Program-made: the position numbers and the translations under genes | Assembly: GCA_964019335.1 (NCBI GenBank) | Contig: OZ025743.1 | Coordinates: forward strand, 248,001-312,000 | Origin: Diplonema japonicum | Taxonomy: Eukaryota > Protista > Euglenozoa: Diplonemea | DNA: 64,000 nucleotides | Reading direction: 5' to 3' | Shown here: positions 1 to 48,173 of the stretch, in pieces | Layout of the letters: each line of letters begins with the position of its first letter | How positions within the stretch are numbered: position 1 is the stretch's first letter | The notes under the pieces: generated by a model | What the model was told of the DNA's origin: nothing | Databases searched by the model: none | The model's input: only the letters and a program-made list of their open reading frames with translations

Positions 1-1600
1 GGGGCCAAGCCTCGAGGTGGACGATGGCGGAAGGGACCATGTAGGCGGGGAGCTTGGAGTCGAGGAGTGTGTTGACAGAGGGAGCGGCGTCGGCGTCGGC
101 CGTGTGCCCCCTCGCGATCACGTAGGCGACGATCCTCTTGTCCCCAGGGATGTCCTCCCTGACGAGACACAGAACGTCCGCTGTCTCTGGGTGCTGGCGA
201 ATCACGTTTTCGATCTCCCCGAGCTCGATCCTGAACCCCCTGATCTTCACCTGGAAGTCCACCCGCCCGATGTACTCCACCGTCCCGTCCGCGAGCCACC
301 GCCCCACGTCCCCGGTCTTGTACAGCCGCCCGCCCTTCCCGGCCGCTCCGAACGGGTCCGCCACGAACCTCTGCGCCGTCAGCCGCGGTTGGTTCTGGTA
401 CCCCCGCGCCAGCTGGTACTTGCCCCCGACGTGCAGCTCCCCACACACCCCGAGGGGCACCGGTTCCATCGCCTCGTTCAACAGGTACATCGTGAAGTCC
501 TTCAGCGGGGTTCCGATGTTGCTCTGGAAGGCCCGCGACATCACCTCCTCCGTGATCTCCTTGATCGTCACGTGAACAGTTGTCTCTGTGATCCCGTACA
601 TGTTCACCAACCGGGGCTGCTTGTACCCGAACCTCTCGAACCACTCCTTCAGGTTAGCCAGTTCCAACTTCTCTCCCCCGAAGACCACGTACCTCACTTG
701 TAGTTCTTTCTTCTTCTTCTTCTTCTCCTTCTTCCCCTCCTCCTCCTCCTGTCCTTCCCCGAGAGCGTAAGGAATGAGTTGGTAGAAAGCAGAGGGTGTC
801 TGGTTCAACACCGTCACCCCCTCATCCACGAGGAGCTCGTAGAAGTCGGGTGGGGATCGAGACACCAAATACGGAACAACCACAAGCTTCCCCCCGTAGC
901 AGAGGGCCCCGTACAGTTCCCAGACACTGAAGTCGAAGGCGGAGCTGTGAAACATCGTCCAGCAGTCCCGTTCTCCGAACCCGTAGAATTCCTCCGATGC
1001 CCGCAGCAGGTGCACCACGTTTCGGTGGCAGATGAAGATCCCCTTCGGCCTTCCTGTGGAACCGGAGGTGAAGATGATGTAGCACAGGTTCTTGCTTGTC
1101 GCCTCCCTCTTCTTTGGGGCAGCTTCCTCCATCACTCCGCTTCCGCTGTTCTCTCCCTCCCCGCCCTTCTCCATGTAGAAGAGCTCTCCCTTGAAGTCGA
1201 GCTCGGCGAGGGCGGCCTTGTGCTCCTCCCGCGTCACCACGTACATCATTTTGCAGTCCTCGATCATGTAGGCGAGGCGGTCCTGCGGGTAGGTCACGTC
1301 CAACGGGATGTACCCTCCCCCTGCCTTCAGGACTGCCATGATCCCCACCACCAGCTCAAGGGACCTCTCCACGTACACCCCTACCAGTACGTCGGGACCC
1401 ACCCCCGCTCTTTTCAGGTGGGCAGCCACACGAGACGCCGCAACGTCCAGCTCCTTGTACGTCAGGCGTTCTCCTCCGTACACCACAGCCGTCCGCTCCC
1501 CGTGCGCCGCAACGCACTTCTCGAACATCCCGTGAAGCGTCTCGTCGCACTCCACATCCTCCTGACGGTCGTTCCACTCCACCAGCATCTGGTGCTGCTC
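1..1600. repeat. Dispersed direct repeat: Thr A domain, copy of 32008-33607
   Basis: Identical shadow ORFs at offset 32007 (138..575 vs 32145..32582; 822..1085 vs 32829..33092). Confidence 0.95.
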
Positions 1601-2915
1601 AACTTTGCTAAGCATAGAGACTGTCGCGTACGGTGCCATCGGTGAGTCAAGAAGGGAGCCGCACAGGTTGATGAAGTGATTCAACATGCGCGACGCCGTT
1701 TCCCTGTGGAACAGGTCGGTGTTGAACTCCAGAGTGAGCTCGTACCCCGTAAGGCGCTCCAAAGCGTTCAGCGTGATGTCGAACTTGCTGATCGTGTTCC
1801 TCGTGTCCACGAAGGACAGCAACAAGTCGTCGCCCAGTTGAGGGTCCATGGGAACGTCTTGCAGAACGAAGCACGCTTGGAACAGAGGGTTGCGGGAGAG
1901 GTCGCGGGCAGGTTGCACGATGTCGACGACCTGCTCAAAGGGAATGTCTCGGTGGGTGTATGCCTTGATGCAGGTGTCCTTTACAATTGTCAAAAGGTCC
2001 TCGAAAGAGCACTTCCCGCTAGAGGCTACTCTGAACACCAAGGTGTTCACGAAGTCGCCCACGCACTTGCTTCCATCACGCCTGCCAACTATGGGCGATC
2101 CCACAGAAACATCGCTAGTGTTGCAATATCTGGACAACAGCACGTTGTACACAGTCAGCAGCGTCATGAAGGTGGTGCAGTTGTTGGCGCTCCCGAAGGC
2201 TTTTAGCCTGTCGGCCACTTCTCTGGGCAGCATCACAGTCACGGAATCGCCGTTGAACGTCTGTCTAGGAGGGCGTGTGAAGTCCAAAGGCAGCTCCAGC
2301 AGCGGTGCGTCAGCAAGGGCATTCTTCCAGTATTCTCCCTGTACCTGCAGCACACTCGGCAGCGCCTGCCGTTGCCATACGGCGTAGTCTGCGTACTGGT
2401 AAGGAAGCTCTTCTTCCTCGTCGGTTTTACCGTTGATCTCTTTGTAGTACCTCTGCGCCAGCTCCTCGACCAAAATGCCAACAGAAGAGCCGTCAGCAAT
2501 GATGTGGTGCACTACTAAGCAGAACACATGGTTTGCTTCTCCCTGTTTCACAAGGCAGCACTTGAACAGTGGGCCTTCAGAGAGACTGAACACGACCTCT
2601 GCTTCCTCTTGGATGATACCACGCAGAAGCTTGTCTTGCTGTCCTGCAGGCTCGGAGCTGATGTCAACGATGGAGAGAGGTGTCGACAGGGTGCATGCAT
2701 CAGATATGATCTGCTTTGGTCCATCGTCATGTTCTTCAAACGTGGTACGGAGGGATTCGTGACGTTCTACAAGGTACTTTACACAGCTCTGCAGCACGTT
2801 GACATCAAGGTGCCCTTCAAACCTCACAACAAGCGGTAGATTGTATGCAGCGCTGTTCGTCGATAGCTGCGACACAATCCACAATCTTTGCTGCGAGTAC
2901 GACACTGGCATCACT
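2..2915 (-). other. NRPS module 12 (partial): C(HHIIADG)-A Thr, cut by the window edge
   Basis: A domain matches module 2 (offset 32007 nt). Confidence 0.87.
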
Positions 2916-5900
2916 GTCCTCCCGTCCACGGTAGCCCTCTCCACATGCTGTACGCCAGCCACCATTCCTGTACCACCCTTTCTCACAAACCTCGCCATGC
3001 CCCTCACAGTCGGATCTTCATACAAGTCCTTCAGAGTCATGCTGCACTCATACGTCTCATTGATGTTCGTCACCAGCATCACCGCCATCAGCGATTGCCC
3101 GCCGATGCCGAAGAAGTCGTCGTCTCTCCCGACGTCCTCTCTCTGCAGCAAAGACTTCAGGATCTCTGCGATCTTCGTTTCCACACTTCCTTCAGGCACA
3201 GCATGTGAAGAAGACTTGCCTGCGTTCATCATCGCATGTCCATCCATGAGTGCCTTCCTGTCTACCTTCCCCGAAGTGTTCTTGGGAAGGGAAGAGAGGA
3301 AGAGGAAGAAGGAAGGGACCATGTAAGAGGGGAGAGAGGACTGGAGGGAGGAGCGAAGGGAGAGGATAAGCTCGTCCTCGTGGACTTGGTCCCGAGGGGC
3401 CTCCGCCAGAACGATGTAGGCGGCGATCGACGAGGATGCTTGTGACAGGGTGCAGCAGCAGTCTTTCACCTCCACTGCCTTTTGCTGACGAACAGCCCCC
3501 TCCACCTCCCCGAGCTCGATCCTGAAGCCACGAACCTTCACCTGGAAGTCCGCCCGACCGCAGAACACCACCCGCCCGTCCTCCTTGAACCTCCCAAGGT
3601 CCCCTGTCTTGTACATCCTGTCCTTCCCGCTGCTCCCGAAAGGGTCCTTCTTGAAACTCTCCGAGGTGAGGTCCGCCCGACCCACGTAGCCACGGGACAC
3701 CTGAGGACCCCCGATCCAGATCATCCCGGTTGCTCCAACAGGGCACAGCTTCCTCTCAGAGTCGAGGATTCGAACCCTCGTGTTCGGGAGAGCCCGCCCG
3801 ATCCCCATCGCCACTTCCGTGTCGTCAGATAGGTCCCCCCGCTTGAAGGTCTCGCAGGTCACCTCCACACAGGTCTCCGTCGGGCCGTAGCAATTGTGGA
3901 ACACCGTGTCGTCCCTCGCCCCGGTCATCCACCTCCGAGCCACCTCCGCAGAAGCCGCCTCCCCTCCCGAGTGGATCCTCTTCAGATCCCGAAGCCCCGT
4001 CCCTTCCACGGATCGCATCACAGAGGGGGTGAGGAACACGCTCTCCACACGCTGTACCTCCAAGAAGTCACGGAGCCCGCTGGTCCTCTCCTCACCGACA
4101 GCCATCGCGAGCCTTGCCCCACCGCACAGGGCGCACAACGTGTCCATCACACTGATGTCGAAGGTGTAGGCGTAGAACTGCAGAGTCCTCTCCCCTTCAC
4201 GTCCCACCACGCGTCCCTCCGTTCCCTTCAGAAGGTTCCACAGGTTCCTCTGTTCCACCACCACACCCTTCGGCTTCCCAGTCGACCCTGATGTGAACAG
4301 GCAGTAGGCCGCAGAGCCTCCCTCCACACAGCCTCTCTTCACCTTCAGTTCTTCAGAAGGAATGTCTTCTTCTTCTTCTTCTTCTTCCCCGCTTCTTCGT
4401 GTGTACAGAACCTGTACCCCGTCCTCCAAGAAGGAGTCACACCCACCGACAGGGCCGTTGCTCACCACCACTCGCACCCCACTGCTCTTCGCCATGTACC
4501 GAAGACGCTCCTCAGGGAGCGACGGGTCCAACGGGACGAACCCTGCCCCGCTCCGGAGGATCCCCACAGTTCCGGTGATCACCTCCGTCGAGCGCGTGCA
4601 GTGGAGACCCACCAACAGCTCCCCTTCGCCGTCCCGCCTCTTCTCCAGCAGTTCCCATGCCACTCTCCGGCTCCTCCTCTCGAGTTCGCCGTAAGTTACT
4701 GCTTCCGTCTCGCAGGTTACTGCAATCTCGTCCTTCGCCTCCTCCATCCTCTCCTCCAGTGCCTCCACAACGTTCCCTTCCCCGAAGTCAACTTCGTTGC
4801 TGTTCCACTCCACAAGGAGTCGGCGCGTGTCTTCAGGGTCAATGACAGAGATGTCTGAGATGAAAACTGCGGGGCTGGAGACAGAGGACTCAACTAGGGT
4901 CTTGAGCGACCGGAGGAGCCGGAGTGCTGTGGCCTCGTCAAAGAGGTCAGTGTTGTACTCAAGTGCAATGCAATGGGCAGCTTCCTGCTTCGTAACATTG
5001 AAAGTGAGGTCCATCTTCGCCACAATATCCTCCTGTTCAATACGTGTTAGCTTGAGCTGCGCATCGACATCGGCAGCAGGTGACGGCGTAGTAGAAATGT
5101 TAAGCAGCACCTGGAAGATCGGGTTACGGCTTAGGTCACGCACAGGGCTGATGGTGTCGACCAGCCTCTCGAAGGGGTAGTCAGAGTGGGTCAGTGCTTG
5201 GAGACAGATCTCCTTGCTCTTTGCAAAGAAGGCCTCAACAGTGTCGGTCGGTGTAACGTTGAAACGCAGCGCAAGTGTATTGACGAAGAACCCAATGAGG
5301 GCCTCTGCCTGAGGGAGCAGTCTGCAAGACACGGGCGTCCCAATCACGACATCAGTGCTTCCTGAGAACTTACTCACCAACACGCTCAAACAGCTTTGCA
5401 GCAGCATGAACAGTGTCAGTCCGTATTTCCCACAAGCGCTCTCTACGATGCAGGTATCAACATCGACACTCACCACCGCTCCGTTGAAGGTCTGCACGGC
5501 GCCTCGAGGACGGTCCGTAGGGATCTCAGTCGTAGGCAGCCCTGTGTCTTGCAAGAGGTGCTCCGTCCAGTACTTGCTCATGACGTCCAGCTTCTGTTCT
5601 GTGAAGGTAGTGCGTTCCCACAACGCGTACGTTCTGTACTGTGTGGTAAGAGGTGGTAGACGCTCGCCTGCGTATAGCCTGCAGAGCTCCGACACGAAAA
5701 TGGAGCTCGACCATGCATCGGTGATGATGTGGTGAAGACTGACTTCAAGATGCCATTTTGCTTCGGCTTGGTTCACAACCTTCACCTCGTATAGCGGGTA
5801 CCTTGATAACATGAACTTCGCGTTTCTGGTATCATCGGCGATCCTTGTCGTGCTCGACACCTCGTCGTAGCCAAGCACCTTCTGCACCACCTTACCTCCA

Positions 5901-8900
5901 GCGATCGTAAACACGGTTCTAAGCGACTCGTGCCTGTCCACCAGCTGCTTCAAGGCGTCTTCCAAGCGCTTCACTTCCAGACTGCCCTGTACCTCAAATA
6001 CGTCCGTCATCCTGTAAGCTTCTGCATCGGACTCGATCTGATCAAGCATGTAAATCCTCTGCATGGCAAAGGTAAGCGGTGCGTCATCTGCACTGGGTTC
6101 CATATCTTCAATCTTTGGTAGAGCTGCTTTGGGTGCCTTCACAACAGCAGTGGCCATGTCAGCAAGGACAGGGTGTTCGAAGACTGTCCTGATGGACAGC
6201 TCGACACCAAGGAGCTTCCTCACCTTCGAGACCAGTCTGGTTGCGGAGATGCTGTCTCCTCCAAAGGAGAAGAAGTCTGAGCCCCTCCCGGCCTTGCTGT
6301 TCCCTCCGAGGACCTCCTCCCATGCGGAGGCGAGACCCTTCTCCACTGCCCCGCGAGGCTCTTCGAACTCCTCCCCGTCTTCTTCAACAGGGACGGGAAG
6401 ACGCTTCCTGTCAACCTTCCCTGCCGCCGACAAGGGAAAGCTCTCCATCCGCACCAGTACGGACGGGACCATGTAGGCAGGAAGTGCCTTCTGTGCCTGT
6501 GACGTCACCGCCTCTCTCCACTCCTCCCCTGCACCAGAGGACTCCTCCTTCTCCTCCTCCAGCACAAAATAGGCAACGAGCCTCTTCTGCCCAGGAAGAT
6601 CCTCTCGCACCACAACAGCGACTTCCACGACACCAGCGACCCTGCTGAGGACAGCCTCCACCTCCCCGAGCTCGATGCGAAGGCCTCGAAGCTTCACCTG
6701 GAAGTCCATCCTCCCACAGAACACGACTTCCCCAGTCTCCAGGCGCCTCCCCAGGTCCCCGCTGAGGTACATCCTCCCACACCCAGGGCTTTTCCCGAGG
6801 GGGAACGGGTCCGCCACAAACTTCTGTGCCGTGAGCCTCGCGTCCCCGACGTAGCCGCGTGCCACCTGAACCCCACCGAAGGCGATCTGCCCCACCACCC
6901 CGGGGCCCACAGCCGCCATCCGCTTGTCCACCACGTAGCACAGAACATTCCTCAGAGGCATCCCGATGGGAACAGGCCCGCCGCCAAGGAGGCGTACCCG
7001 CTCCAAAGCCGCCCCGTCCCTCTCGAACACGAATGCGTTCGTCGACACGCTCACCTCCGTCGGACCGTACGAGTTGATGAGCCTCACCCCTGCTCCCATG
7101 CACCTCTCCACCTGCACCAACGGGAGCTCCTCTCCCATCGCCGCAATCGTGCGAAGCCGGGGGAACACTCTCTTCCCTTGTTCTTCTGTTGAAAGTTGTG
7201 TTTGCTCATCCTTCTCTCCTCCTCCCCCGTTGTTGAAGAAGGGGAGGCCCGCGAGCACCGACGGAGACAGCTGGCACATTTCCACCCTCTCCTTCGCAAG
7301 AAGGGCCGCGAGGTCCTCCCCAAGAGGCTGCCTCGACCCTTCCCCGAAGACAAGGGTGCCCCCTTGCAGCAAGGCAAGGAACACCTCGCTGATCGACGCA
7401 TCGAAGGTGAACGACGCGAACTCCAGAACCCGCGCCCCTTCCCCGGGGGCGAATCGCTCTCCCTCACCGTAGATGAAGCTGCACAGCCCAGCGTGCTCGA
7501 TCTGTACCCCTTTCGGTTTCCCTGTCGACCCTGAGGTGTAGATCACGTAGGCAAGGTCTTTCTCGGACAGGTCCCCCTCGCCTTTGCTTGAAGAGACCTG
7601 CTGCGCCCCTCCCTTCTGCTCCTTCATCATCTCCTCAGCTGCCAGAACCTGAACAGAGGAATCAGCAGAGAGGCGCTCCGCCACCTGCGTCCTGTCATCC
7701 TTCAGACACACCACAACCTGCATCCCGATGTCTTCCATGATGTACAGGAGCCTCTCCGAGGGGATGTCTCTTGCCAGCGGGACGTACACGGCCTCTCCTC
7801 GCCAGCATCCGAGCATCGCCACCAGTGCAAGGAGGGAGCGGTCCATGAGGACACCGACAGCCCCGCCCTTTCGAACACCGGCCTCCCGGAGCCCTGCCCC
7901 CACGCGGCCGACCAACTCTTCAAGCCTTCCGTAGGTCACCAGGTCTTCTCCGCACTGCACCGCCACGCTGTCAGGCCTCTCCATGCTCATCTCCTTCACG
8001 ATCCTGTCCACTCGCTGCGTCTTGTAAGGCACCGACTCGTCCAGCTCGTTCCACCCCACAGTTACCTTCTGGTGCTCTTCAGGAGTCATCGTAGATAGAG
8101 ACCCAACAGGTGTGGAGGGATCACGCAAAATATCATCAAGAAGGATTTCCCACCTGCGAAGGAAGGCAGTGATGTCAGCGGCCTCGAAGAGGTCTGTGTT
8201 GTACTCACAGATGATGGTCGTGCCTGTCGATGTTTCTGCGGCTGTAAGCATCAAGTCGAACTTAGCGACAGTGCTCGGTACGTCAAAGGGCTCATAAGTA
8301 GTGCCCGAGGAGGGTGCCATGGACTTGGCTTCCATGTCGAACATGACTTGGAAGAGAGGGTTGCGGCTGGGGTCTCTTTGCGGCTGGACTAGCTGCACGA
8401 TGTCCTCGAAAGGCAGCATGGCGTGTGTGAAGATGTCGCTCACATCCTTCTTGACATCCGCCACAAGGTCCGAAAAGGGTTGCAGGGGATGGGACTTCGT
8501 CCTGTACACCACTGTGTTCATGAAGAAGCCTAGTACGTCTTGGATCTGGGGGTTCAGCCTGTTGGCCATGACACCGCCCACCATGACTTCGTCAACACCC
8601 GACCACTTGGCAAGCACTACGTGCAAGGACGCCAAAAGCATCTGATGAATTGTTACACCGAATTCTGTGCACAACTTGTTCAACCCTTGTGTCACGTCTG
8701 GCACGATGAGCATGTCGATGGAGCTCCCGTTGAAGGTTTGCACTGGCGGGCGTTTTTTATTCGAGATGTTGATTACAGGCAGGTCACCGGACAGGTACGA
8801 CTGCCAGAAGGACTTTGCCGAGTGCGGTCTGCACGCCTCACGATGCCACACGGCATAGTCGATGTACTGCACAGGTAGCGGTGGGAACTCAGGGGTGGTA

Positions 8901-11900
8901 CCCGAGAGGTATGCCTCGTAGCATGCAATAAGCTGTTGGATAAGCATTCCCATGGACCACCCATCGCCCACAATGTGGTGAAGCGTCAGCAGCAGCAGCT
9001 GATCGATACCGTTGGTGGCGGTCTTCACACGAAGAAGAGGTGCTGTCGCAAGATCGAAGCACTGCTGTGCCTCCACCCTGGCTGTGGACAAAAGATCTTC
9101 GGTGTGGATGGTCTCGACCGGGCACAGCACAGGACCTTCGGCAACTACCTGCTGCGGCTGCTCAGTGCTGCTTTCAATGAAGTACGTCCTGAGCGACTCG
9201 TGTCTGTCCAACATCGCATCCACCGCACGCTGCAGTACCGGAACGTTGATTTTGCTACCTACCTTCACTGCAAAGGGCAAGTTGTATGCAGCCGACTCGC
9301 GGTCCATCATAGTCATGATGTAGATCTGGTGCTGCGCGGGGCTCAACGGGTACGGCACCGTGCGCTGCTCCAGCACAGCGATTTGCTCCTGTTCGAAGTC
9401 TGCCCCATCAGCGCCCAGCAGTTGGTCCGCTTTACATGCGATTGCCACAACAGAAGGGTCTGCAAAGAAGTCTTTGATGGGTACTTCAACACCTAAACGC
9501 ACTTTCAGCGCTGCAAGCAGCTTCACGGCAAGAAGCGAATGTCCCCCAAGGTTGAAGAACTTCCCGTTCCTCCCAACAGTGCAGCCCAGCAGGTCGGTGA
9601 AGACTTCCGCGACAATGCGCTCGGAATACGTTTCCGGAGGCTGGTAAGAGGCGGGGAGGACTGCGTCAGGGATGGGAAGGGCTTTCTTGTCGACCTTTCC
9701 TGCGGGGTTCAGAGGCATAGACTCGAGACACACGACGGCAGATGGTACCATGTGTACAGGAAGTGTTCCTGCTGCATGGGTAGTGATGGTGTCGGTGTCT
9801 GCGGTGCCAACAACGTACGCCACAATGCGCTTGTCGCCGGGCGTGTCCTCACGGACGATGCAGACACAGTCGGCGACGCCTTGGCAGGAGATCACCGCGG
9901 CCTCGATCTCCCCGAGCTCGATCCGGAACCCACGGATCTTCACCTGGTGGTCGATCCTTCCGACGAACTCAATATTACCATCACGCAAGTACCTCGCAAG
10001 GTCGCCCGTACGATACATCCTCTGCGAGGAGTCGAACGGTGATGTAGTAAATTTCTCCGCAGTCAACTCCGGCCTGTTCAGGTACCCACGAGTCACCTGG
10101 ATACCAGCTACACAGATCTCACCAGCAACACCGATCGGCTGCGGTGACGCGGTGGGCGACAAGATGTACAGGGATTGGTTGTGTGTGACCCTTCCGATAG
10201 GAACAAAGTGCTGCGGGGTGTTCGGGGTGACCTCGTAGTGAGTGGCCTCAATGGACGTCTCGGTGGGACCGTACAGGTTGAAGAACCTCCTGTTCATCAT
10301 CCAGCGCTGCCTGGCGGCAATGGAGCATGCCTCACCAGCAGTCACCATAGAATGCAGCATCGGCAACCCATCTGACGGCAGCACGGCAAGCAGCGATTGC
10401 GGCAGTAAGGCAGCAGTGACGCCCTGTCTGTTCATAATCCTGACCACGTTTTCTCCAAACAGGTCATCTTTTGTCGGCATCACAAGGGCACCTCCTGATC
10501 CAAGGCACATGAACACTTCCCACACAGAAGCGTCGAAGCTGAACGCTGCGAACTGTAAAACACGGTCACACGTTGTCCAGCCAAGGTTCACCCTGTTTGA
10601 ATACACCAGGTTGACGATGCCCTTGTGAGGGACAAGCACACCCTTCGGCTTCCCTGTCGACCCAGAGGTGTAGATCACGTAGGCGAGGTCCTCCTCGCTC
10701 ACGCTGGGCAGTTTCACGTCTCCTACCGTCGTGCTGCAAAACACCTCTTTCACATCAAGGCACCTCACTCCTTCTGGTACGGCAATCCCTGCCAACACTT
10801 CCTTGCTGCTTACTATAACCTTCATCCCCGAATCTTCTATCATGTACTCCAAGCGGTCCTTCGGGTAGTTCGGGTCCAGTGGGACGAATGCACCCCCCGC
10901 CTTCAGAACACCTAAAAGCATGGGTACCAGCTCGAGCGACTTAGGCAAGCAAAGGCCGACAAGTGTGTCGGGGGTGCTGACACCGTGAGCCACGAGATTG
11001 TGGGCGACACAAGTAGTAACTTGTTGGAGCCCCTCGTAGGTGTAGTGTTGGCCTTCGTATGAGAGGGCCACTGTGTCCGGGTGCTCTTCGGCTTCGTCTT
11101 GGAATATTTCGTGCAAAAGCTTCTGTTTGGGAAACGACATTTCACTGTCGTTCCACTCGTTGAGGAGAAGGTGGGTCTCCGAAGGGGTCAGCATTTGAAC
11201 ATTGCGAACCTTCTGATGCGGGTTCTTGAAGACGGCTCTGAGAAGCTCCTGGTAGTGTGCTCCCATCTGGGCGATGGTCTCCCTGTCAAATAGATCTGTG
11301 TTGTACTCCCAGTGGACCTTCACCCCTGCCGCCTCTTCGATGCAACTCACCGTCAGGTCGAACCTCGAGTGAGTCGTTTCCGTCTCGTACGGGGTGGCAT
11401 CTAGATGCCCCTTCTCCTCTGAGGAAGAAGACCCGTACGATGGGGTGTTCTGTAGAATGAACATGACTTGGAAGACGGGGTTCCTGCTCAGGTCTCTGTC
11501 AGGACGGAGTTCTTTGACAAGTTCTTCAAAAGGGAGGTTCGAGTTGGAAAAGGCCTCGAACGCCGTTGCCTTCACCTGCTGGAGCAGCTCCATGAACGTG
11601 GGATCGCCCTCCACCTTGCATCGCACCACAACGGTATTGATGAAGAATCCGATCAGCCCTTCAACAGCCTGCTGCACTCTGCCCGCAACAGGCGTACCCA
11701 ACACAATGTCGTCCTGACCAGAGTATCTCGACATCAGCATGTTGAAGACAGCCAACAGCACCACGTAGGTCGTTGATCCTGTTCGCTTGGCCAAGCTTGA
11801 GACCGACTGTGCTACTCCCGCAGGAATCAGAATGTCCAACGAGCTCCCGCTGTACTGCTGTATCGCAGGGCGGGGCCTGTCTGTTGGAAGCTGCAACGTG

Positions 11901-26900: not shown

Positions 26901-29900
26901 AAGATACAGGCGTACATGATGATGGACCTGTCAATACAGATCCCCACAGGGCTTCCTCTTCTTAGACCTTGGCCTCGTAGGTTCCATGCCAGAGCATTGG
27001 CTAGCTGGTCCAACGCAGAGTATGTGATCTGCACATCAGCGAAGGAGATGGCAACAGTATCGGGGTACTCGGTAGCAGTGTTTTCGAAAAGCTTGTCTAC
27101 CACCACAGGCTGCCATTCTTCTGTGAGGGTGTCGTTCCACTCCAGTTGCTGCTCGACTTCCACGGTGCTCAGCATTCCTACAGAGGATAGCGGGTCTGCC
27201 AACATGCACGGTACTTCTCGGAGGAAGGTAGCTAAGTGCTGCAGCATCTTCTTGGCCGTGTTTCCGTCAAACAGCGCGGTGCAGTACTCAAGCTTCAGCT
27301 GGAGCCCTTGCGACCCTGCGTCCGTCACGAAGAACGTCAAATCGTAGCGCGACTTGCTGCCCTGCATCTCGATCTCTTCGAAGTCGTTGCCGCTTCCTTT
27401 CATCTTCTGCCCGCTCACAAGCATCACTTGGAACAGCGGATGCCTGCTGGGGTCGTACGAAGGCCGCGTAACTTCGACCACCTTCTCAAACGACGTGTCA
27501 GAGTGGCTCATCGCGTCGCTGCACACATTCTTCGCCCTGTCGAGCAGCCCTTGGTATGTGAGAGGGGACGCATCGTTGTCGGTGTTGACCCTCAACACAA
27601 GTAGATTCACAAAGAACCCTATCAAGTCTTCAAGCTGCACCGATGGTCTGTTTGCAACAGGTGTACCTATCACCACGTCACGGCTCCCTGTGTACCTAGT
27701 CAGCATTGCCGACAGGCATGCCACAGAGCACATGAAGAGCGTGTACCCTGATCTGCACAGCTGTCTGAGTTCTGTGATTTGAGTATCCGGGATGACCAGT
27801 GTTTCTGTCGACCCAGCATACGACTGCATTGGCGGCCTGGGGTGGTCAGTGGCAAGCGGGAGCGTTGGGAGGTCACGAAGAGTGGTCTCCCAGAATGAAA
27901 GTTGCCTTGCCTGCTCGTCTTGTTCCACCCAATCACGATGCCACGCTGCGTAGTCGCCGTACTGAATGCTCAAAGGGGGCAAGTGCGGGTCAATCCCCGC
28001 ATGGAGGCTGCGGTACACGGTTGTGAGGTCCTTGACAAGGACATTCAATGACCACGCATCGGCTATGATGTGGTGTATGCAGAGGACGAGGCACGTGCCT
28101 GTGGCAGTTAAAACATGCGTGATACGCAGCAAGGGTGGTATCTGGAGGTCGAATGCCGCGTTCTCTTGTTCCTTCACGAGCTTGGTTATCATGGCGTGCA
28201 GGTTTTCGTCAGAAAGGTGCCTGCAGTCGACCTTCCCAAGAGTGAAGGGAGCAGTGTCGTGGATCGTGGTGGTGTCAGAGGTGGTGAATGAGCACCTGAG
28301 GACCTCGTGCCTGCCGATGACCTTTATGGCAGCCGCTTGCAAGGTGCTGTGGTCAAGAGCACCGCACACCTTCACAGCGTCCACCATGTTGTAGGCTGCT
28401 TTGTCGTCGTCGACAGCATCTAGAAGCCACAGTCTCTGCTGTGCAAGACTAGTCGGCAAGCTTTCCTCAGTCTGCCTCTGTGCTGCTGAAGGTATCTCAC
28501 TGTACGTGCTCGTCCCTTGTTTCGTCTTTATCAGCTCTGCCAGTGCTGAGACTGTGTCGTTTTCAAAGAACTCCTTCATAGTGACAGTAGCGTTCATCCC
28601 GGCCTTCAGGCTGGCAACCACCCGCACAGCGAGCAAGGAGTGCCCACCATTCTCAAAAAAGCTCATTGTAGATGTGATGGTGTCCATCTCTAGCACCTGC
28701 TTGAAGCACTCGGCAACCGTGCACTGCAGTTCTCCGCTGGGCGCCGCACCTTGATCTTTCTGGTATTCCGGTGCTGGCAGCTTCTTTCTGTCTGTTTTAC
28801 CACTGATTAGCTTCGGAAACTCCACAAGTCTCACATAGGCAGATGGCTTCATGTACGATGGCAGCTTCCCAGCGACTTCCTTCTCTAGGTCGTCTGCCTG
28901 TGCCTGCGGTGTCTTGAAGATGACGTAGGCAACGACACGTTTGTCGCCAGGCTTGTCTTCTCTCACCATCACGCACACGTCGCGCACTACAGAGTTTGCA
29001 CGCAGTACGGTTTCGATCTCCCCGAGCTCGATCCTGAAGCCCCTGATCTTCACCTGGTGGTCCAGCCTTCCCACGTACTCGACCTCACCCCCTGCCCAGA
29101 ACCTGCACAGATCCCCTGTCTTGTACAGCATACCCTCCGCGTAGGGGTTTTTGACAAACATCTTGTTCGTGAGCTCCGGCCTGTTAAGGTACCCTCTTGC
29201 AATCTGCACCCCGCTGCAGCACAGCTCACCGTACGCGCCGGGAGGCGCAGAGAGGTTCGTTTTAGGGTCCAAGATGTAGGACTTGCAGTTTGCAGTTGGG
29301 CGCCCGATGGGCTTCATGATGTTAGTTGAGTTCCAGTCCATTTTGTGCCAAACAATCTCGATGGAGCACTCCGTAGGGCCGTACAGGTCATACAACACAC
29401 TGCTTGGGAACCTCTTGTGGAACTGTCTCGCGAGCTGGTTGGACAGAGCTTCGCCAGAAGCAGCAGAGACCCTCACCTTCTTGAACTTTTCAGCGTACTC
29501 TTCGCCGATGACTGTGCAGAACGCCTCGAGCATGGAAGGGACGAAGTGGAGGACTGTGACGTGCTCCTCTTCGATGAAGGAGGCGATGTACGAGGGGTCG
29601 GTGTGGCCTCCAGGCTTCGTGAAGGCGAGGCGTGCCCCTGTCATGAGCGGCCAGAACAGCTCCCACACAGACACGTCGAAGATGTACGGGGTCTTCTGCA
29701 TCACCACATCCTCCCCAGCCACGAGTGGTTCCTTCTCCGCCAGCCACCGCAGCCTGTTCACCGTCCCAGAGTGCTGCAACATCACCCCCTTCGGGAGCCC
29801 AGTCGACCCCGAGGTGTAGATGATGTAGGCGAGGTTCTGTGCCGTCACGCACGATGCGGGGCGCTCCACAGACATCGGAGCAAACACCTCGTCCCACTCC

Positions 29901-32900
29901 GTGTCCAGCTCGCAGCACCACACCCCGGGAGCCTCCGGGACGCGTCCCCTGCACCCTCCCTGCGTCAACACCACCCCTGCCTTGCAGTCGTTCATGATGT
30001 ACAGCGTCCTGTCCTTCGGGTAGCTCGGGTCCACAGGAACGTAGCAGCCCCCGGCCTTCATCACCCCCAGGATCCCCACAGCCATCTCCACACTCCTCTC
30101 CAGCATCAGCACCACGGGCACCTCCGGTCCCACCCCTCGCTGGTGCAGCACGTGCGCCACCTGGTTCGCCCGCTCCTCCAGCTCCCGCCCGCTCAGCACC
30201 CTGTTCTCGTCCGACACCGCCTTCGCGACAGGGTTTTCGTCCACAGCCGCTTCAAACAGCTCGTGCATGCATGGCGCACCGGGGAATTCCCTTGCTGTGT
30301 CATTCCACTCCACTAAGGTTTGGTGAAGCTCCTGAGGGGGAACTAGCGGACAGGTTTCGGGGTCGCAGTCAGGGTTTTCCGCAATGTGCGTGAGAAGTAC
30401 ATCAAACCTGTTCAACAACAACTGCATGGTGGCTGGCGCGAAGAGCTTTGTACAGAATTCCATGCTAAAGGTGTAGTCGCCCGACTGAGACTCTCGTGCG
30501 AAGAGGCACATGTCGAACCTGCTGACCTTCTGGTCGAAGTCATACATTGAAAAGGTAAGGTCGGACACATCGATCTTCTCGAAGGGCGCGTTCTGCAGCA
30601 CAAACATGACCTGGAAGAGAGGATTCCTGCTCATGTCCCTTTCAGGCTGCACTGCCTCAACGACCTTCTCGAAGGGAACGTCTTGGTTGGCATAAGCTCC
30701 TACGCAGGTCTTTCGCATCCTATGGACGAGCTCTTTGAAGGTGCCCGCCTTGGTAAGGTCGAGGCGCAGCGTGAGCGTGTTGACAAAGAGACCGATGAGG
30801 TTGTGCAGCTCGGTGCGGTTCCTGCCTGCGATGGGGGTACCGATGCAGATGTCCTGCTGATTACTGTAGCGTGACAACAGCACATTGAAGCAGGCGGCGA
30901 GCACCATGAATATGGTTGCGTTGCACGACCTTCCAATCAGCTTCAGCTTTTCCATCACGGCAGCCGGCACCACATGACGCACCACCGAACCCTCAAAGCT
31001 CTGCACACGCTTCCTCGGATAATCAGTAGGGAACTGCAACGTTGGGGCTTCTGCAAGAACAGTCTTCCAGTACTCTACTTGCTGATGAAGGGTGTCAGAC
31101 TTGGTGAGAGCAGTCTTTTGCCACAACGCGTAGTCGCCGTACTGCACAGGCAGCTGTGTCAAGCTTGGGGTGCGTCGTTCTTTGAGTGCTTTGTATATCT
31201 CGGTAACCTCTTCCACGAGGACGTTCAGGGACCACCCGTCCGACACGATGTGGTGCATGACCACCAAAAGCATCGAAAGCTCCTCTGTAATATTGTACAG
31301 CGTCACCTTCATCAAAGGCGCCTCGGCGAGGCTCATAACTACTTTGGAATCGGTCTCCAGCATGGTGTCAACCTGCGACATGTCCAGCCCTGCGTGCTGG
31401 AGGTCTTTGACGTCTACCTGTACTGTCTTGTCGGTAACTATTTGGATCAGGTTTTCGTCGGCATCCTGTCCAAACGAAGTCCTCAGCACTTCATGCCTTT
31501 CACACAACACTGTCATGACTTCTTGAAGGGTGTCGTTGTCCACACGGCCTGTCACCTTGACGGCGCCTGAGATGTTGTACACTCCCTGTAAATTCTTCCC
31601 ACCTTCAATCACTTCGATGAGCCACATCCGCTGCTGTGCGAACGAAGCGGGCAACAAGTCAGCACCAGACGCCCTCGGGGTCAGTTCAGGAAGGTCCGTG
31701 TGCAGCGCTTGCAGCTCTTCGATGATGCTTGCCACGTGCACGATGTCGGAGTGCTCGAAGAACTGCTTCAACGTCACTTCCACGCCGAACGTGTCCTTCA
31801 CAACACCCAGCAGCCTCACGGCAAGCAGCGAATGGCCACCCATATCAAAGAAGTCAGAGTCACGCGACACCCTCTCAACACCGAGCAGCGACGTGATGAT
31901 ACCCTCCAACATCTCCTCAGTGACACCTACAGGTTGAGTGTAGTCATCACCAACATCGATCTGCGGCTTTGGCAGTGCCCTCCTGTCAGTCTTCCCTTGT
32001 GCAGTGAGGGGCCAAGCCTCGAGGTGGACGATGGCGGAAGGGACCATGTAGGCGGGGAGCTTGGAGTCGAGGAGTGTGTTGACAGAGGGAGCGGCGTCGG
32101 CGTCGGCCGTGTGCCCCCTCGCGATCACGTAGGCGACGATCCTCTTGTCCCCAGGGATGTCCTCCCTGACGAGACACAGAACGTCCGCTGTCTCTGGGTG
32201 CTGGCGAATCACGTTTTCGATCTCCCCGAGCTCGATCCTGAACCCCCTGATCTTCACCTGGAAGTCCACCCGCCCGATGTACTCCACCGTCCCGTCCGCG
32301 AGCCACCGCCCCACGTCCCCGGTCTTGTACAGCCGCCCGCCCTTCCCGGCCGCTCCGAACGGGTCCGCCACGAACCTCTGCGCCGTCAGCCGCGGTTGGT
32401 TCTGGTACCCCCGCGCCAGCTGGTACTTGCCCCCGACGTGCAGCTCCCCACACACCCCGAGGGGCACCGGTTCCATCGCCTCGTTCAACAGGTACATCGT
32501 GAAGTCCTTCAGCGGGGTTCCGATGTTGCTCTGGAAGGCCCGCGACATCACCTCCTCCGTGATCTCCTTGATCGTCACGTGAACAGTTGTCTCTGTGATC
32601 CCGTACATGTTCACCAACCGGGGCTGCTTGTACCCGAACCTCTCGAACCACTCCTTCAGGTTAGCCAGTTCCAACTTCTCTCCCCCGAAGACCACGTACC
32701 TCACTTGTAGTTCTTTCTTCTTCTTCTTCTTCTCCTTCTTCCCCTCCTCCTCCTCCTGTCCTTCCCCGAGAGCGTAAGGAATGAGTTGGTAGAAAGCAGA
32801 GGGTGTCTGGTTCAACACCGTCACCCCCTCATCCACGAGGAGCTCGTAGAAGTCGGGTGGGGATCGAGACACCAAATACGGAACAACCACAAGCTTCCCC

Positions 32901-35900
32901 CCGTAGCAGAGGGCCCCGTACAGTTCCCAGACACTGAAGTCGAAGGCGGAGCTGTGAAACATCGTCCAGCAGTCCCGTTCTCCGAACCCGTAGAATTCCT
33001 CCGATGCCCGCAGCAGGTGCACCACGTTTCGGTGGCAGATGAAGATCCCCTTCGGCCTTCCTGTGGAACCGGAGGTGAAGATGATGTAGCACAGGTTCTT
33101 GCTTGTCGCCTCCCTCTTCTTTGGGGCAGCTTCCTCCATCACTCCGCTTCCGCTGTTCTCTCCCTCCCCGCCCTTCTCCATGTAGAAGAGCTCTCCCTTG
33201 AAGTCGAGCTCGGCGAGGGCGGCCTTGTGCTCCTCCCGCGTCACCACGTACATCATTTTGCAGTCCTCGATCATGTAGGCGAGGCGGTCCTGCGGGTAGG
33301 TCACGTCCAACGGGATGTACCCTCCCCCTGCCTTCAGGACTGCCATGATCCCCACCACCAGCTCAAGGGACCTCTCCACGTACACCCCTACCAGTACGTC
33401 GGGACCCACCCCCGCTCTTTTCAGGTGGGCAGCCACACGAGACGCCGCAACGTCCAGCTCCTTGTACGTCAGGCGTTCTCCTCCGTACACCACAGCCGTC
33501 CGCTCCCCGTGCGCCGCAACGCACTTCTCGAACATCCCGTGAAGCGTCTCGTCGCACTCCACATCCTCCTGACGGTCGTTCCACTCCACCAGCATCTGGT
33601 GCTGCTCCACCTTTGTGAGTATCTGAGCAGTGGTAACGTCCTGCACGGGTGAGCTGCTTAGACTGTCGCACAGGTTGGTGAAGTGCGAAAGCATCAAACT
33701 GGCAGTGCTCTCCCTAAAGAGGTCGGTGTTGTACTCCACATAAAGGTCGACAGACCCGTCTGTCCGGATAGTGGACCCGAAGACGAGATCGAACTTAGAG
33801 ATGTGCGTGTCGACGTCAAGCTGCGAGAGCTGCATGTCGGACAGCAGGGATGTGGTCTCGAGGGGTGGCTCATCATGCTGGACAAAAACAACCTGGAACA
33901 GAGGGTTGCGGGACATGTCACGTTCTGGCTGGATGGCCTCCACGAGTTTTTCGAAAGGCAGTTCCTGATGTGCCAGCGCGGACTCGACCGTTTGCTTGAT
34001 GTTGGTGATAACGTTGAGGAAGGACCCCGTCGCCGACATGCGCAGCACAACGGTGTTCACGAAGTCGCCGATCATTTCCTGGAACTCAGCACGGCTCCTG
34101 CCCGACACCGGTGAGCCCACCACGATGTCCTTCTGGTTGGAATACCTCGAAAGCAGCACGGTGAGGACCGCCAGCTGCAATACAAAAGGTGTTGCGGAGT
34201 GTTTCCTGCCCACATCCTGCAGCTTCTTGAATACGCTCGCAGAGAGGGTACTCTTCACCCTGGCGCCGTTGAAGGTCTGCAAGGGGGGGCGTTGAAAGTC
34301 AGTGGGAAGCTCCAAGAGGGGAAGGTCGGCAAGAGTGTGCACCCAGTAGTCAGAAAGCGTCTTTAAGAATGTGGAGTCGGCAAGTCGCTCTCGTTGCCAA
34401 AGGGCGTAGTCGGAGTACTGCACGGACAGCGCAGGGAGTGAGAAGTTGTGTCTCTCCTGCATGGTTTTCATGCTGCTGTAGGCTTTCGCAATGTCTGCCA
34501 TGAAGACAAGCATGCTCCACCCGTCAAACACAGTGTGGTGAGACGTGATGACCAACACGTTGTCATCTTTGGCACACACCACCACCTGTGCCCTTAACAG
34601 AGGTGGTGCCGTCAGGTCGAACATCGTCCTCGCCTCTTTGCTCATCAGGTCCTGCATGAAGCTCGCGTTGTACCCTCCTGGGCAGTTGGTTACCCTTAGC
34701 TTCAACTCACAGCTTTCGATACGCTGGCAGGGCGGTGGCCCCTCGTGCAGGCCTGTTCTCAGCGCCTCGTGCTTCTCGAGTACCTTCTGCAAGCTGTCCT
34801 CCAGCAGGCCGATGTCCAGTTCGCCCTTGATCCTGACACCGCCAGGCATGTTGTAAGCCATGGCCCCCTTGTCGATGCGATCCACTACCCACAGCCTCTG
34901 CTGGGAGTACGACATTGGTGCTTCGCCGAGTCCTCGCTTTTCCACTTTGCTCGCGCTGCCTTGGCTTTGTTTCACGTACCCGGCCACGCCCTTAATGCTG
35001 GGATCCTTGAAGAGCTGCTTGAAAGGAACCTCTACCTGTAGTGTCCTAGTGATCAACCCAAGCAGTTGGACGGCTAGAAGCGAGTTTCCCCCGGCGCTGA
35101 AGAAGCTGTCCTTTACACCGATTCCGAATTTCAAAACTTCACCAAAGAGTTCTCCGATTTTCTGCTCCACCTCATCAAGTGGTTCTTCTAAATCATTGAC
35201 TGCAGTGGTAGGCGTTGGATCAGGGAGCGCCTTCCTGTCTACCTTCCCCGAAGTGTTCTTGGGAAGGGAAGAGAGGAAGAGGAAGAAGGAAGGGACCATG
35301 TAAGAGGGGAGAGAGGACTGGAGGGAGGAGCGGAGGGAGAGGATAAGCTCGTCCTCGTGGACTTGGTCCCGAGGGGCCTCCGCCAGAACGATGTAGGCGG
35401 CGATCGACGAGGATGCTTGTGACAGGGTGCAGCAGCAGTCTTTCACCTCCACTGCCTTTTGCTGACGAACAGCTCCCTCGACCTCCCCGAGCTCGATCCT
35501 GAAGCCACGAACCTTCACCTGGAAGTCCGCCCGACCGCAGAACACCACCCGCCCGTCCTCCTTGAACCTCCCAAGGTCCCCTGTCTTGTACATCCTGTCC
35601 TTCCCGCTGCTCCCGAAAGGGTCCTTCTTGAAACTCTCCGAGGTGAGGTCCGCCCGACCCACGTAGCCACGGGACACCTGAGGACCCCCGATCCAGATCA
35701 TCCCAGTTGCTCCAACAGGGCACAGCTTCCTCTCAGAGTCGAGGATTCGAACCCTCGTGTTCGGGAGAGCCCGCCCGATCCCCATCGCCACTTCCGTGTC
35801 GTCAGATAGGTCCCCCCGCTTGAAGGTCTCGCAGGTCACCTCCACACAGGTCTCCGTCGGGCCGTAGCAATTGTGGAACACCGTGTCGTCCCTCGCCCCG

Positions 35901-38900
35901 GTCATCCACCTCCGAGCCACCTCCGCAGAAGCCGCCTCCCCTCCCGAGTGGATCCTCTTCAGATCCCGAAGCCCCGTCCCTTCCACGGATCGCATCACAG
36001 AGGGGGTGAGGAACACGCTCTCCACACGCTGTACCTCCAAGAAGTCACGGAGCCCGCTGGTCCTCTCCTCACCGACAGCCATCGCGAGCCTTGCCCCACC
36101 GCACAGGGCGCACAACGTGTCCATCACACTGATGTCGAAGGTGTAGGCGTAGAACTGCAGAGTCCTCTCCCCTTCACGTCCCACCACGCGTCCCTCCGTT
36201 CCCTTCAGAAGGTTCCACAGGTTCCTCTGTTCCACCACCACACCCTTCGGCTTCCCAGTCGACCCTGATGTGAACAGGCAGTAGGCCGCAGAGCCTCCCT
36301 CCACACAGCCTCTCTTCACCTTCAGTTCTTCAGAAGGAATGTCTTCTTCTTCTTCTTCTTCTTCCCCGCTTCTTCGTGTGTACAGAACCTGTACCCCGTC
36401 CTCCAAGAAGGAGTCACACCCACCGACAGGGCCGTTGCTCACCACCACTCGCACCCCACTGCTCTTCGCCATGTACCGAAGACGCTCCTCAGGGAGCGAC
36501 GGGTCCAACGGGACGAACCCTGCCCCGCTCCGGAGGATCCCCACAGTTCCGGTGATCACCTCCGTCGAGCGCGTGCAGTGGAGACCCACCAACAGCTCCC
36601 CTTCGCCGTCCCGCCTCTTCTCCAGCAGTTCCCATGCCACTCTCCGGCTCCTCCTCTCGAGTTCGCCGTAAGTTACTGCTTCCGTCTCGCAGGTTACTGC
36701 AATCTCATCCCTCGCCTTTTCCATCCTCTCCTCCAGTGCCTCCACAACGTTCCCTTCCCCGAAGTCAGCCTCGTTGCTGTTCCACTCCACGAGAAGTCGG
36801 TGTCGCTCTGTTGCAGTGATCAACGACACATCGGTCAGGGGTAGCACGGTGTTAGCGACGACCTGCTCCAAGACGTTCTTGAGGCCCGACAAGAGGCGCT
36901 TGGCGGTGCTAGCCTTATAGAGGTCAGTGTTGTACTCCAACTGGAAATGGATCTCGTTGCCGACCTCCTGTGCGGTCATCGTCATGTCGAATTTGGAGGT
37001 GTAGGCAGGGGCGGGGAGCTGCGTGATGGTGCACGACCTGAGGGCGATGGGCTTGGTGGGGGCATTGCCGAGGATGAAGCATATCTGGAAGAGCGGATTG
37101 CGGCTGGTGTCACGCGGGAGGTTTAGCTCGTCAACCAGCTTCTCAAAAGGCAAGTCTTGATTCGTGAAAGAGTTCATGGAGTTCTCCTTCAGGGACGCAA
37201 CGAGGGCCTCGAAGCTCATGGACTGCACAACCTCCGCCCTTATGCAGACGGTGTTAATGAATAGGCCCAGCATTTGGGTCATTTCTTGCTCGGGCCTATT
37301 CAGAACAGGTGTTCCGATGGTAAGGTCGGTCTCGCCAGTCACCTTTGCAAGAACAGCTTTCCAAGCAGCCAGCAGGACTGTGAAGAGAGTCCCGTTCGTC
37401 TTCTTGACCAAGCTGCGCACACCGCTGGCAACTTTCTCGTTTACGACGATCCACTCAGCAGCGCCAGGCAGGGATAGAACCTCAGGACGCGGGTAGTCGG
37501 TGGGTACCACAGCTGGTGTAAACCCCTTCAAGGTCTTCTTCCAAAACAATGTCTGTTCCGCAAGCGCACCTGGACTGCTGTACCATATCCGCTGGCTGCA
37601 AGAGTAGTCGACGTACTGCAGCTTTGGGGGATGCACTGTATACGGTGTACCCAAGGACAGATTGTTGTAAATACGTGTGAACTCTGATATAAAATGCCTC
37701 AGCGACCACCCATCAGTGATGATGTGGTGCACGGCAAAGACGAGAAGGATATCGTCAGTGTCCTGGTGCAGCAGCGTCACACGGAAGAGAGGGAAGCAGC
37801 TGAGGTCGAAAGGCGTGACCGCCGCTGCCTTGAGGGATGCATCGAGGTTGTCGGTGTGTGTGTGCAGTACGTTGGGCGTGACCTCCAACCCACTGGCAGG
37901 GAGAACCTGCTGGTACGGGTTCCCGTCCTCGTCGTTAAAGACTGTCCGCAGCACTTCGTGTGCCTCAACAAGTATTTCCAAGCTTTTCTTCACTGCGGCA
38001 ACGTCGAGCACACCCCGCACGGAGCACATCGCATGCAGCACATAAGCTTCGCTGCCCTGCAACCTGTCCAGCACCCACATCCTCTGTTGCTGCACAGACA
38101 TTGTGTACCTTCCCACTTGGTTCCTCTTCGTCTGTCGTACCCGCATCCTTCCGGATCGCACCCTATCAGGGGATGCTTGTGTCGCATTTTGCTTTCTTGT
38201 GGTGCTCTCTTGCATGCTATGGATCGCCTTTGCAAGATCGCAGACTATGGGATATTTAAACAGCATTCCGGGGGAGATCGGGCTGCGCAACCCCATCCAC
38301 GTGCTGATGTCCTGCGCGATGGCGACCATGCTGATAGACTCGATCCCCAGGTCGGCCAAGCTCACGGAGGGGGAGACCAAGTCAGGCGTGGCAGCGTACA
38401 TTTTCAGCAATAAAAGCAGTTTCTGCGTCAGCTGCTCGAGCGTCTTCGTGCTGCGCGATTCGCTGACGGCAGTAGGGCTTCTCAGCACTGTGGTGACGCT
38501 CTTTTCAAATGCTTTCCAGTTGATCCAAGCGGCGGTGATGACCCCACCGTCGGAGCTCATCAGCCTGCTCAAGGCTGCCGTGGTCTGGTCCTGCGTGAAC
38601 TTCATGAGCCCGATGGAGGTAAGGGCGTCAACTGCTGACTTCCCTTCACGGGCCAGCATTCCAGTCTGGCCAAGGACACCCCAATGGACAACCAGGCAGG
38701 GAAGTCCAGCAGATTTCCTCACTGAGCACAAGCCGTCCAATGCGGCATTGGCTGCAGCGTAGCACAGCTGGCCTTGCATCGGGAGGCAAGCTGCCACCGA
38801 TCCAAAGCACACGAAGTGGTCCAGGTCGCAGTGCAGGGTCGCTTCGTGGAGGTGCATGGCAGCCATGACCTTTCCTGCGAAGGCGTTATCCAAGTTCTGC

Positions 38901-47411: not shown

Positions 47412-47548
47412 TGGGGGGGGGTCTAAAAAAGCTCGAAATTCGTGTTTTTTTTCAGAAAACGCACTTCTGGGTAAATTTACACACTCACGAACGAATTTGG
47501 CCTAATTTCGATCCCCCCCCCCCCCCCCCCCTCCCTCCCTCCCTCCCC

Positions 47549-48142: not shown

Positions 48143-48173
<31 letters not shown>

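Follow-up and report, generated by a model that had tools for sequence, protein, structure and literature searches.

The question raised by this locus is how one gene can contain adenylation (A) domains that are nearly identical to each other, whereas the condensation (C) domains preceding them are as different as those of unrelated modules. The locus is a stretch of 64,000 nucleotides (nt), hereafter the window, of the protist Diplonema japonicum (Euglenozoa, Diplonemea; assembly GCA_964019335.1, contig OZ025743.1, positions 248,001 to 312,000). Its minus strand carries a large part of a hybrid gene of polyketide synthase (PKS) and nonribosomal peptide synthetase (NRPS) type. A first inspection of the letters without database searches (the sequence-only reading) had noticed an A type X in modules 1, 5 and 11, a Thr-like A domain in modules 2 and 12, a type Y in modules 6 and 10 and a Ser-like type in modules 3 and 7. 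It had proposed intragenic gene conversion or swapping of A domains. The analysis described below supports this proposal: recurrent non-reciprocal homologous recombination inside the gene (gene conversion without crossover) probably overwrites and homogenises the A domains, a reading to which we give a probability of roughly 0.7.

The extension of the window by 40 kb of contig on its left (negative positions) shows that one intronless minus-strand frame extends without a stop over 21,455 codons, from 44638 down to -19726, with a candidate start ATG at 44263 that is preceded by A/T homopolymer runs. In the window alone, the sole long open frame through the region is also on the minus strand (2 to 44638). 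The gene runs 19.7 kb beyond the left edge and reaches 18 modules, of which modules 1 to 12 lie in the window; their numbering in the sequence-only reading is the order of the gene on the minus strand. A domain map was built from the gene's own domains, alongside Pfam. The protein opens with a weak AMP-binding domain, then ACP, KS, AT, KR and a second ACP; 18 C-A-T modules come next (T being the carrier domain). The Pfam matches are Condensation, AMP-binding, AMP-binding_C, PP-binding, ketoacyl-synt, Acyl_transf_1 and KR, and the NRPS domains are far above the cut-off. With 18 Condensation, 18 AMP-binding and 18 carrier domains in C-A-T order in one polypeptide, the enzyme is a modular type I NRPS. 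The catalytic motifs of such enzymes are HHxxxD in the C domain, the Ser of GGxS in the T domain and the Lys of motif A10 in the A domain. HHxxxD is present in all 18 C domains (the final G is replaced by A or E in three of them), GGxS(L/I) in all 18 T domains, and the A10 Lys, at what we take to be position 517, in all 18 A domains. The names A1 to A10 and the Stachelhaus positions are used here as we presume them to apply to these A domains.

Six A families cover 14 of the 18 A domains, and A4, A9, A16 and A18 are unique. The exact nucleotide runs shared within families measure 731-1,919 nt (Table 1), whereas the longest exact run obtained by chance, when the aligned sites are shuffled 1,000 times, is 30-53 nt per pair. 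About 20.7 kb of the 64.4-kb frame is included in such tracts (our own sum). The BLAST comparison of the window with itself reproduced the four families announced by the sequence-only reading, with near-identity over 0.8-1.9 kb. The copies are 99.2-99.5% identical over about 1.58 kb for X, 99.9% identical for the Thr-like type and 99.7% identical over 1,950 nt for Y; the Ser-like pair is 89.8% identical overall, including an exact block of 842 nt. Unique or unrelated A domains are only 31-46% identical in amino acids (aa) and differ at about half of their nucleotides. In the codon alignment of the 18 modules, there is no differing codon in the 529-639 codons of the pairs 6/10, 8/14 and 13/15, nor in the 1,646-nt tract of the pair 2/12 (549 codons, alignment columns 487-1079). 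The pocket code of the Thr-like domain of module 2, read at what we take to be the Stachelhaus positions, is DFWNVGMVHK. Several cassettes contain Glu/Lys-rich low-complexity insertions between core motifs (A2 and A6, at 32405-33517 and 19643-20776, and their copies); the Thr-like and Y domains have for instance about 20-25 extra residues between pocket positions, which are absent from other modules.

The identity at synonymous sites is decisive for the idea that selection for the same protein, by convergence or by strong constraint, keeps the A domains alike. Copies of one family have identical pocket codes and presumably load the same substrate, as this idea expects. However, synonymous sites are identical too, with zero differing codons in three pairs, and the unique A domains reach only 31-46% aa identity under the same constraint. 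Selection on the protein alone is refuted by these synonymous sites, and we consider an explanation of this type scarcely credible.

Perfect identity over 1.6-1.9 kb is also what a collapse or an over-correction could yield, if divergent copies were homogenised, or repeats misjoined, by the assembler. On the other hand, the unique A domains differ by about 50% in nucleotides, which is beyond any read corrector, unique C and T sequences border each cassette, and the X copies have retained private differences. The 104 kb examined contain no N and no gap, and no stop interrupts the 21,455 codons of the frame. The published assembly of D. japonicum YPF1604 (62,535,345 bp) was obtained with hifiasm from PacBio HiFi reads at 102x and scaffolded with Hi-C; the published passages give 8.40e5 reads and 7.93 Gb and never use the word "polish" (PMC13598402). 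The mean read length, by division of these published counts, is about 9.4 kb, several times the length of the repeats. An assembly artefact is therefore very improbable.

If whole modules had been duplicated, the C and T domains would pair like the A domains, a pattern that, for the C domains, the sequence-only reading had itself named as evidence against its proposal. Neither the comparison nor the tree of the C domains displays this pattern. The 153 pairs of C domains are 26-41% identical in aa and 42-52% in nt, and the claim that no two C domains share the identity seen in the A domains holds for the whole gene (maximum 41% aa, 52% nt). Pairs of modules sharing an A family have a mean C identity of 35.3%, all remaining pairs one of 33.9% (permutation p = 0.07). 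The maximum-likelihood tree of the C domains is star-like, with none of its 15 inner branches fully supported, and four of the six families (X, Y, Ser-like and V) are not clades in it. The only sister pairs among the families are C2/C12 (88/90) and C8/C14 (94/89). In this tree the terminal branches are longest (2.0-2.5 changes per column, for a median of 1.3) for C11, C10, C6, C5 and C1, the C domains located upstream of the X and Y cassettes. The T domains are 31-67% identical in aa, except T6/T10, which are included in a tract. The A families, at 99-100% identity, are incongruent with their C domains. Because the latter are as diverged as unrelated ones, whole-module duplication, tandem or not, is excluded as the source of the A identity, as the sequence-only reading had argued from 12 modules.

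A weaker version of this explanation supposes ancient duplications of whole modules followed by concerted evolution of the A domains only: the C and T domains diverged, and no A domain ever replaced a different one. The two sister pairs, which are moderately supported, suit it, as does the T identity above background for the pairs 2/12, 8/14 and 13/15 (61, 57 and 67% aa). In addition, A3, A7 and A16 are grouped in an older family at 58-59% aa, and C3 and C7 both have C16 as their nearest C domain. Nevertheless C1/C5/C11 (28-32% aa) and C6/C10 (30%) resemble each other no more than random pairs do and form clades in 0% of the bootstrap trees, the permutation test over all families gives only the p value indicated above, and module 17, described below, is a chimera of unrelated parts. 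As a general explanation, ancient duplication is quite unlikely.

The sequence-only reading had also pointed out that three pairs are separated by exactly four modules. The offsets (12,762, 12,768 and 12,792 nt) are real, but the regularity is not supported as a signal. Over the whole gene the offsets are 2, 2, 4, 4, 4, 4, 6, 6, 10 and 10 modules (the additional 4 comes from 13/17), C1/C5, C3/C7 and C6/C10 are not sisters, and no pairing of period 4 appears in the C tree. A block duplication of period 4 was rejected.

The limits of the tracts were mapped on the codon alignment. The 5' ends of all six families are found in columns 482-501, at or 1-13 residues ahead of the EWN/GWN motif. This motif lies in the C-A linker and occurs in 17 of the 18 modules. 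The 3' ends of four families (X, Thr-like, W and V) are found in columns 1074-1089, just past GKxDRxxLPxP (A10), and the tract of family Y extends to the end of the T domain (column 1170). These positions agree with the limits given in the sequence-only reading, namely the xWN motif of the linker on one side and A10 or the end of T on the other. The perfect block of the Ser-like pair stops at column 814, inside Acore and before A5, presumably two or three codons short of specificity position 299. The tract of module 17 (columns 704-990) begins a little past A3 and ends a little past A8. An exchange restricted to Acore, with the native linker and Asub kept, does not describe these data: in five of the six families the tract goes from the linker through Asub past A10, and partial tracts are seen only in module 17 (A3 to A8) and in modules 3 and 7 (linker to before A5). 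The background nt conservation among unrelated modules (mean 0.475) has local peaks at columns 495 (0.64), 680 (0.83), 985 (0.85) and 1073 (0.71). The tract ends adjoin these peaks, and the module-17 tract is bounded by the two strongest ones, A3 and A8.

Several tracts are mosaics. The ends of the X copies are staggered (columns 493/487/501 and 1077/1074), and these copies also show private differences; six of those in module 1 lie close together, in one group of four within five codons and another of two within three. Between modules 3 and 7, the first 280 codons of the A region match at 100%, and the remainder is 75.5% identical in nt, with exact patches of 59, 82 and 49 nt. T2 and T12, otherwise diverged, have in common an exact patch of 44 nt ending in the FF of FFxxGGxS. 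In module 17 the tract is 100% identical to module 13. Its 5' flank is at background identity with this module (46.7% nt, 33.6% aa), which indicates that sequence of an unrelated A domain has replaced a part of this one, and its 3' flank is slightly above background (55.4% nt, 48.6% aa). Identity at synonymous sites, sharp ends and mosaic patches, the marks of gene conversion, are found together in these tracts, and the staggered X ends, the clustered patches and the mosaic of modules 3 and 7 point to repeated events. The differences of the X family were too few (12 variable codons) to be polarised for GC bias.

The G+C content at third codon positions (GC3) is higher inside the tracts. It is 0.755-0.84 in the five fully converted families and 0.64-0.72 in the four unique A domains (Mann-Whitney p = 0.008), with a mean of 0.69 and a maximum of 0.75 in the C domains. 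The contrast holds segment by segment, GC3 being raised in all six families and only inside the tracts: 0.82-0.85 in the tract and 0.60-0.75 outside for modules 3 and 7, 0.81-0.82 and 0.66-0.69, respectively, for module 17. The contrast persists at four-fold degenerate sites, with G+C values of 0.69-0.79 against 0.55-0.65. Since all these regions belong to one gene, expression cannot differ between them. GC-biased conversion is widespread in eukaryotes, and the GC3 contrast would be the trace of its long action.

These data bear on a further alternative, a few recent one-off replacements of cassettes by microhomology-mediated template switching or by illegitimate recombination at conserved motifs, the copies being identical because they are young. 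Such events would account for tracts that end at short conserved motifs, for the four pairs with zero differences and for the flanks of module 17. However, a single recent copying would not raise GC3 in all six families and only inside the tracts, and the staggered X ends, the clustered patches and the mosaic of modules 3 and 7 argue for repeated events. The GC3 pattern favours recurrent homogenisation over a single copy event, and we regard one-off replacement as unlikely.

The proposal of gene conversion or A-domain swapping made from the sequence only is supported by the sharp staggered ends, the mosaics, the 5' flank of module 17 at background and the raised GC3. From these observations we infer gene conversion as the mechanism, its recurrence, its GC bias and its effect on the peptide. 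The A segments, alone or with T, would be copied non-reciprocally from one module of the gene to another, the C domains being left untouched. The tract ends would be pinned near the DNA stretches that are alike in all modules (EWN, A3, A8, A10/LPxP and FFxxGGxS of the T domain), so that the copied unit would usually be the linker and the whole A domain, sometimes A and T, sometimes a sub-domain. The process would have two effects. By overwriting, module 17 would now bear the specificity pocket of modules 13 and 15. By homogenising, existing copies would be kept identical, as in the four pairs without difference over 1.6-1.9 kb. The same residue is predicted at positions 1/5/11, 2/12, 6/10, 8/14 and 13/15/17 of the peptide, and similar ones at 3/7. 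We also infer that the process is ongoing, and in which direction the copies were made.

Five points weigh against this interpretation. First, the flanks are only about 47-55% identical, and a recombination between them would not be an ordinary homologous one; the first replacement step may for this reason use another route. Second, the C domains of the Thr-like and W families are weakly supported sisters, and an old module duplication may therefore underlie these two families. Third, the GC3 contrast opposes five or six families to four unique domains and could in principle reflect something else. Fourth, the identities of the copies are judged from the assembled sequence alone, which leaves a small residual doubt about an artefact. 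Fifth, no orthologue and no second strain were found among the matches searched, of which none listed exceeds 37% identity.

This last point comes from several searches, in which the database matches listed are NRPS proteins of bacterial type. The best 120 of 868 matches to a module query are at 28-35% identity, all bacterial, and the best 120 of 527 matches to a query of 401 aa covering the C/A junction are at 28-36%. With C11 as query against 1.84 billion representatives, the best 150 matches are at 28-37%, in a ranking by summed score that could miss short fragments of high identity. A scan of the JGI metagenomes gave 590 pattern matches, none of which was confirmed. Inside the genome, an 18-kb query with the A domains of modules 7 to 12 (X, Thr-like, Y, Ser-like, W and A9) gave strong matches only in this gene and, outside it, one match of 115 nt at 79% on another contig; V, A4, A16 and A18 are not part of this query. 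An archive of cassettes elsewhere in the genome was rejected for the families X, Thr-like, Y, Ser-like and W and for the unique A9. A genome-wide search for Condensation domains gave 21 matches, 18 in this gene and three weak ones elsewhere: this gene is the sole large NRPS of the genome.

Table 1. Features of the PKS-NRPS gene of D. japonicum. Positions are those of the window (negative: left of it). Positions in the family rows are those of the BLAST comparison of the window with itself.
Feature	Position	Strand	Remarks
Hybrid PKS-NRPS, in-window part	1..44263	-	open frame and Pfam
Loading region (weak AMP-binding, ACP, KS, AT, KR, second ACP)	38105..44263	-	Pfam; within this piece: AMP-binding (46 bits); PP-binding 524-589; KS 609-964; AT 1111-1413; KR 1688-1864
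Family X, modules 11, 5, 1	3248-4836; 22463-24051; 35225-36800		exact runs 1,048; 1,001; 823 nt
Family Thr-like, modules 12, 2	1-1607; 32008-33615		exact run 1,646 nt
Family Y, modules 10, 6	6129-8077; 18921-20869		exact run 1,919 nt
Family Ser-like, modules 7, 3	16043-17557; 28811-30325		exact run 842 nt
Family W, modules 8, 14			exact run 1,594 nt
Family V, modules 13, 15			exact run 1,591 nt; both modules left of the window
V sub-block, module 17			exact run 731 nt; left of the window
Cassette X, module 1	35217..36800	-	linker and whole A; 99.2-99.3% to modules 5 and 11; exact runs 1,048 and 1,001 nt
Cassette X, module 5	22455..24051	-	6 codons differ from the module-11 copy
Cassette X, module 11	3248..4836	-	self-BLAST, exact runs
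Thr-like cassette, module 2	31827..33615	-	linker and A, diverged gap of 28 codons, identical T patch of 44 nt
Thr-like cassette, module 12	1..1607	-	continues outside the window to -183
Cassette Y, module 6	18921..20869	-	linker, A and whole T; exact 1,919 nt with module 10
Cassette Y, module 10	6129..8077	-	partner of module 6
Ser-like A, module 3	28811..30325	-	~29469-30310 identical to module 7; remainder mosaic
Ser-like A, module 7	16043..17557	-	~16701-17542 identical to module 3
Cassette W, module 8	12801..14397	-	partner module 14 at -6450..-4854; 99.94% over 1,597 nt
C1	36845-38104	-	Pfam/domain map
C2	33641-34918	-	Pfam/domain map
C3	30365-31651	-	Pfam/domain map
C4	27191-28456	-	Pfam/domain map
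C5	24080-25378	-	Pfam/domain map
C6	20903-22147	-	Pfam/domain map
C7	17600-18868	-	Pfam/domain map
C8	14414-15685	-	Pfam/domain map
C9	11213-12487	-	Pfam/domain map
C10	8111-9349	-	Pfam/domain map
C11	4865-6079	-	Pfam/domain map
C12	1634-2908	-	Pfam/domain map

Concerning the two extremities of the protein, the second carrier motif of the loading region is GIDSI. The KS domain (41372-42439, minus strand) appears to be without its catalytic triad, with a Ser at what we take to be the Cys motif and neither of the two presumed His motifs found; beside it, the AT, the KR and the two carrier motifs are in place. At the other end, Pfam detected no thioesterase, reductase or terminal C domain in the 134 residues that follow T18 (-19726..-19325; contig 228275-228676), and the next open frame downstream encodes a protein kinase. 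The neighbouring frames on the same strand encode proteins of eukaryotic type (a protein kinase, an ankyrin/ADP-ribosyltransferase protein, ETF-alpha and a biotin carboxylase), and the gene is a real nuclear gene of D. japonicum and not a bacterial contaminant.

In the 104 kb (-40000..64000), all the frames of at least 400 codons are on the minus strand except five, of which four fall within the NRPS gene and the fifth is antisense to the ankyrin frame; this bias is consistent with one long array of genes on the same strand. The intergenic DNA is largely composed of long A and T homopolymer runs (44264-44740), and nearly identical runs of about 40 nt recur between genes (48498-48540, 52316-52355 and 55829-55871). 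Finally, an open frame of 2,236 codons without Pfam match (57292-63999, minus strand) runs off the window. It contains an internal repeat (61765-62383 and 63382-64000) of 86.8% identity whose copies are 1,617 nt apart.

Recombination of A domains is known from other systems. In microcystin synthetase it is reportedly, by the title of Shishido et al. 2013 (PMC3640908), a recombination altering the peptide, compared between cyanobacterial strains. In the engineering of NRPS, the XU fusion point is placed in the C-A linker, at the motif WNATE. XU and XUT are laboratory design rules for chimeras, and XU moves A-T-C units, whereas in the present gene the C domains never move. XUT units are fused in the T domain at FFxxGGxS, which the parts consulted of a preprint report as a natural boundary (10.1101/2022.12.02.518901); similarly, the natural ends found here are at the EWN linker motif, and that of the T2/T12 patch is inside FFxxGGxS. 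The sequence-only reading had placed the junctions close to those used in engineering, and this is borne out for the C/A boundary and linker, as presented in passages of Calcott et al. 2020 (PMC7486941), and for FFxxGGxS, in the same preprint (10.1101/2022.12.02.518901).

In bacterial NRPS, according to the passages available of Baunach et al. 2021 (PMC8097286), recombination has its hotspot in Acore, and the native linker and Asub tend to be retained. As in that work, A sequence would recombine here independently of C and change amino-acid positions; the proposed sites of recombination are conserved core motifs, and there are swaps of sub-domains, represented here by module 17 and by modules 3 and 7. 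Unlike in that work, five of the six families carry a part of the linker and the whole A domain including Asub, one of them also T, the host is a eukaryote, all the partners are in one gene and 14 of the 18 A domains are involved. Calcott et al. 2020 describe, in the same passages (PMC7486941), three hotspots, namely the C/A boundary, the interval from A2 to A4 and the vicinity of A5, and a "linker + A" substitution that works. The 5' junctions observed here are in the same linker, and those of module 17 and modules 3/7 are near A3 and before A5; their hotspots are a statistical inference over modules of Pseudomonas, Bacillus and Streptomyces, whereas here exact tracts are seen in one eukaryotic gene. 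For wollamide and desotamide, excerpts of Booth et al. 2022 (PMC9205934) report one intragenomic event in an A domain, and point to the homogenising effect of gene conversion and to duplications hidden by conversion or by concerted evolution. That event is, like those proposed here, a non-reciprocal exchange inside A domains within one genome, between NRPS loci in that case. It is a single event between two loci of Streptomyces, whereas many events, with perfect identity, are concerned in the present gene. A recombination of A independent of C is already established in bacteria, and the gene of D. japonicum is an extreme eukaryotic case of that kind. It differs from the known cases by its eukaryotic host, by the restriction to a single gene, by the perfect tracts in 14 of 18 A domains and by the usual unit, the linker and whole A including Asub. 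No paper on a diplonemid NRPS was found in the literature searched, which is a limited collection.

The way in which assembly-line enzymes change their natural product underlies the rules of NRPS engineering, for which the evidence is mostly statistical and bacterial. Here a single gene lets the events be read directly, as exact tracts whose ends are visible. Units made of the linker and whole A, of A and T, or of the segment from A3 to A8 can all adjoin C domains that share only about 30-40% identity among themselves, the frame of 21,455 codons remaining open. The GC3 contrast offers a simple sequence signature to separate long-running conversion from a one-off swap. Going further, a tentative possibility is a long-term concerted evolution by GC-biased conversion, able to overwrite unrelated A domains, in which the peptide would be rewritten in place and the perfect direct repeats of 1.6-1.9 kb would also generate in-frame deletions and duplications of modules. 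A segmental conversion using short homology, by analogy with the mosaics of antigen genes in the kinetoplastids (the sister group), would be far less likely. If the possibility of long-term concerted evolution is true, isolates of D. japonicum, and even cells of one culture, should differ in module number, order or cassette content. In any case the gene is an unusually clear example from nature, which could be used, within one organism, to test the rewriting of an NRPS by ongoing gene conversion.

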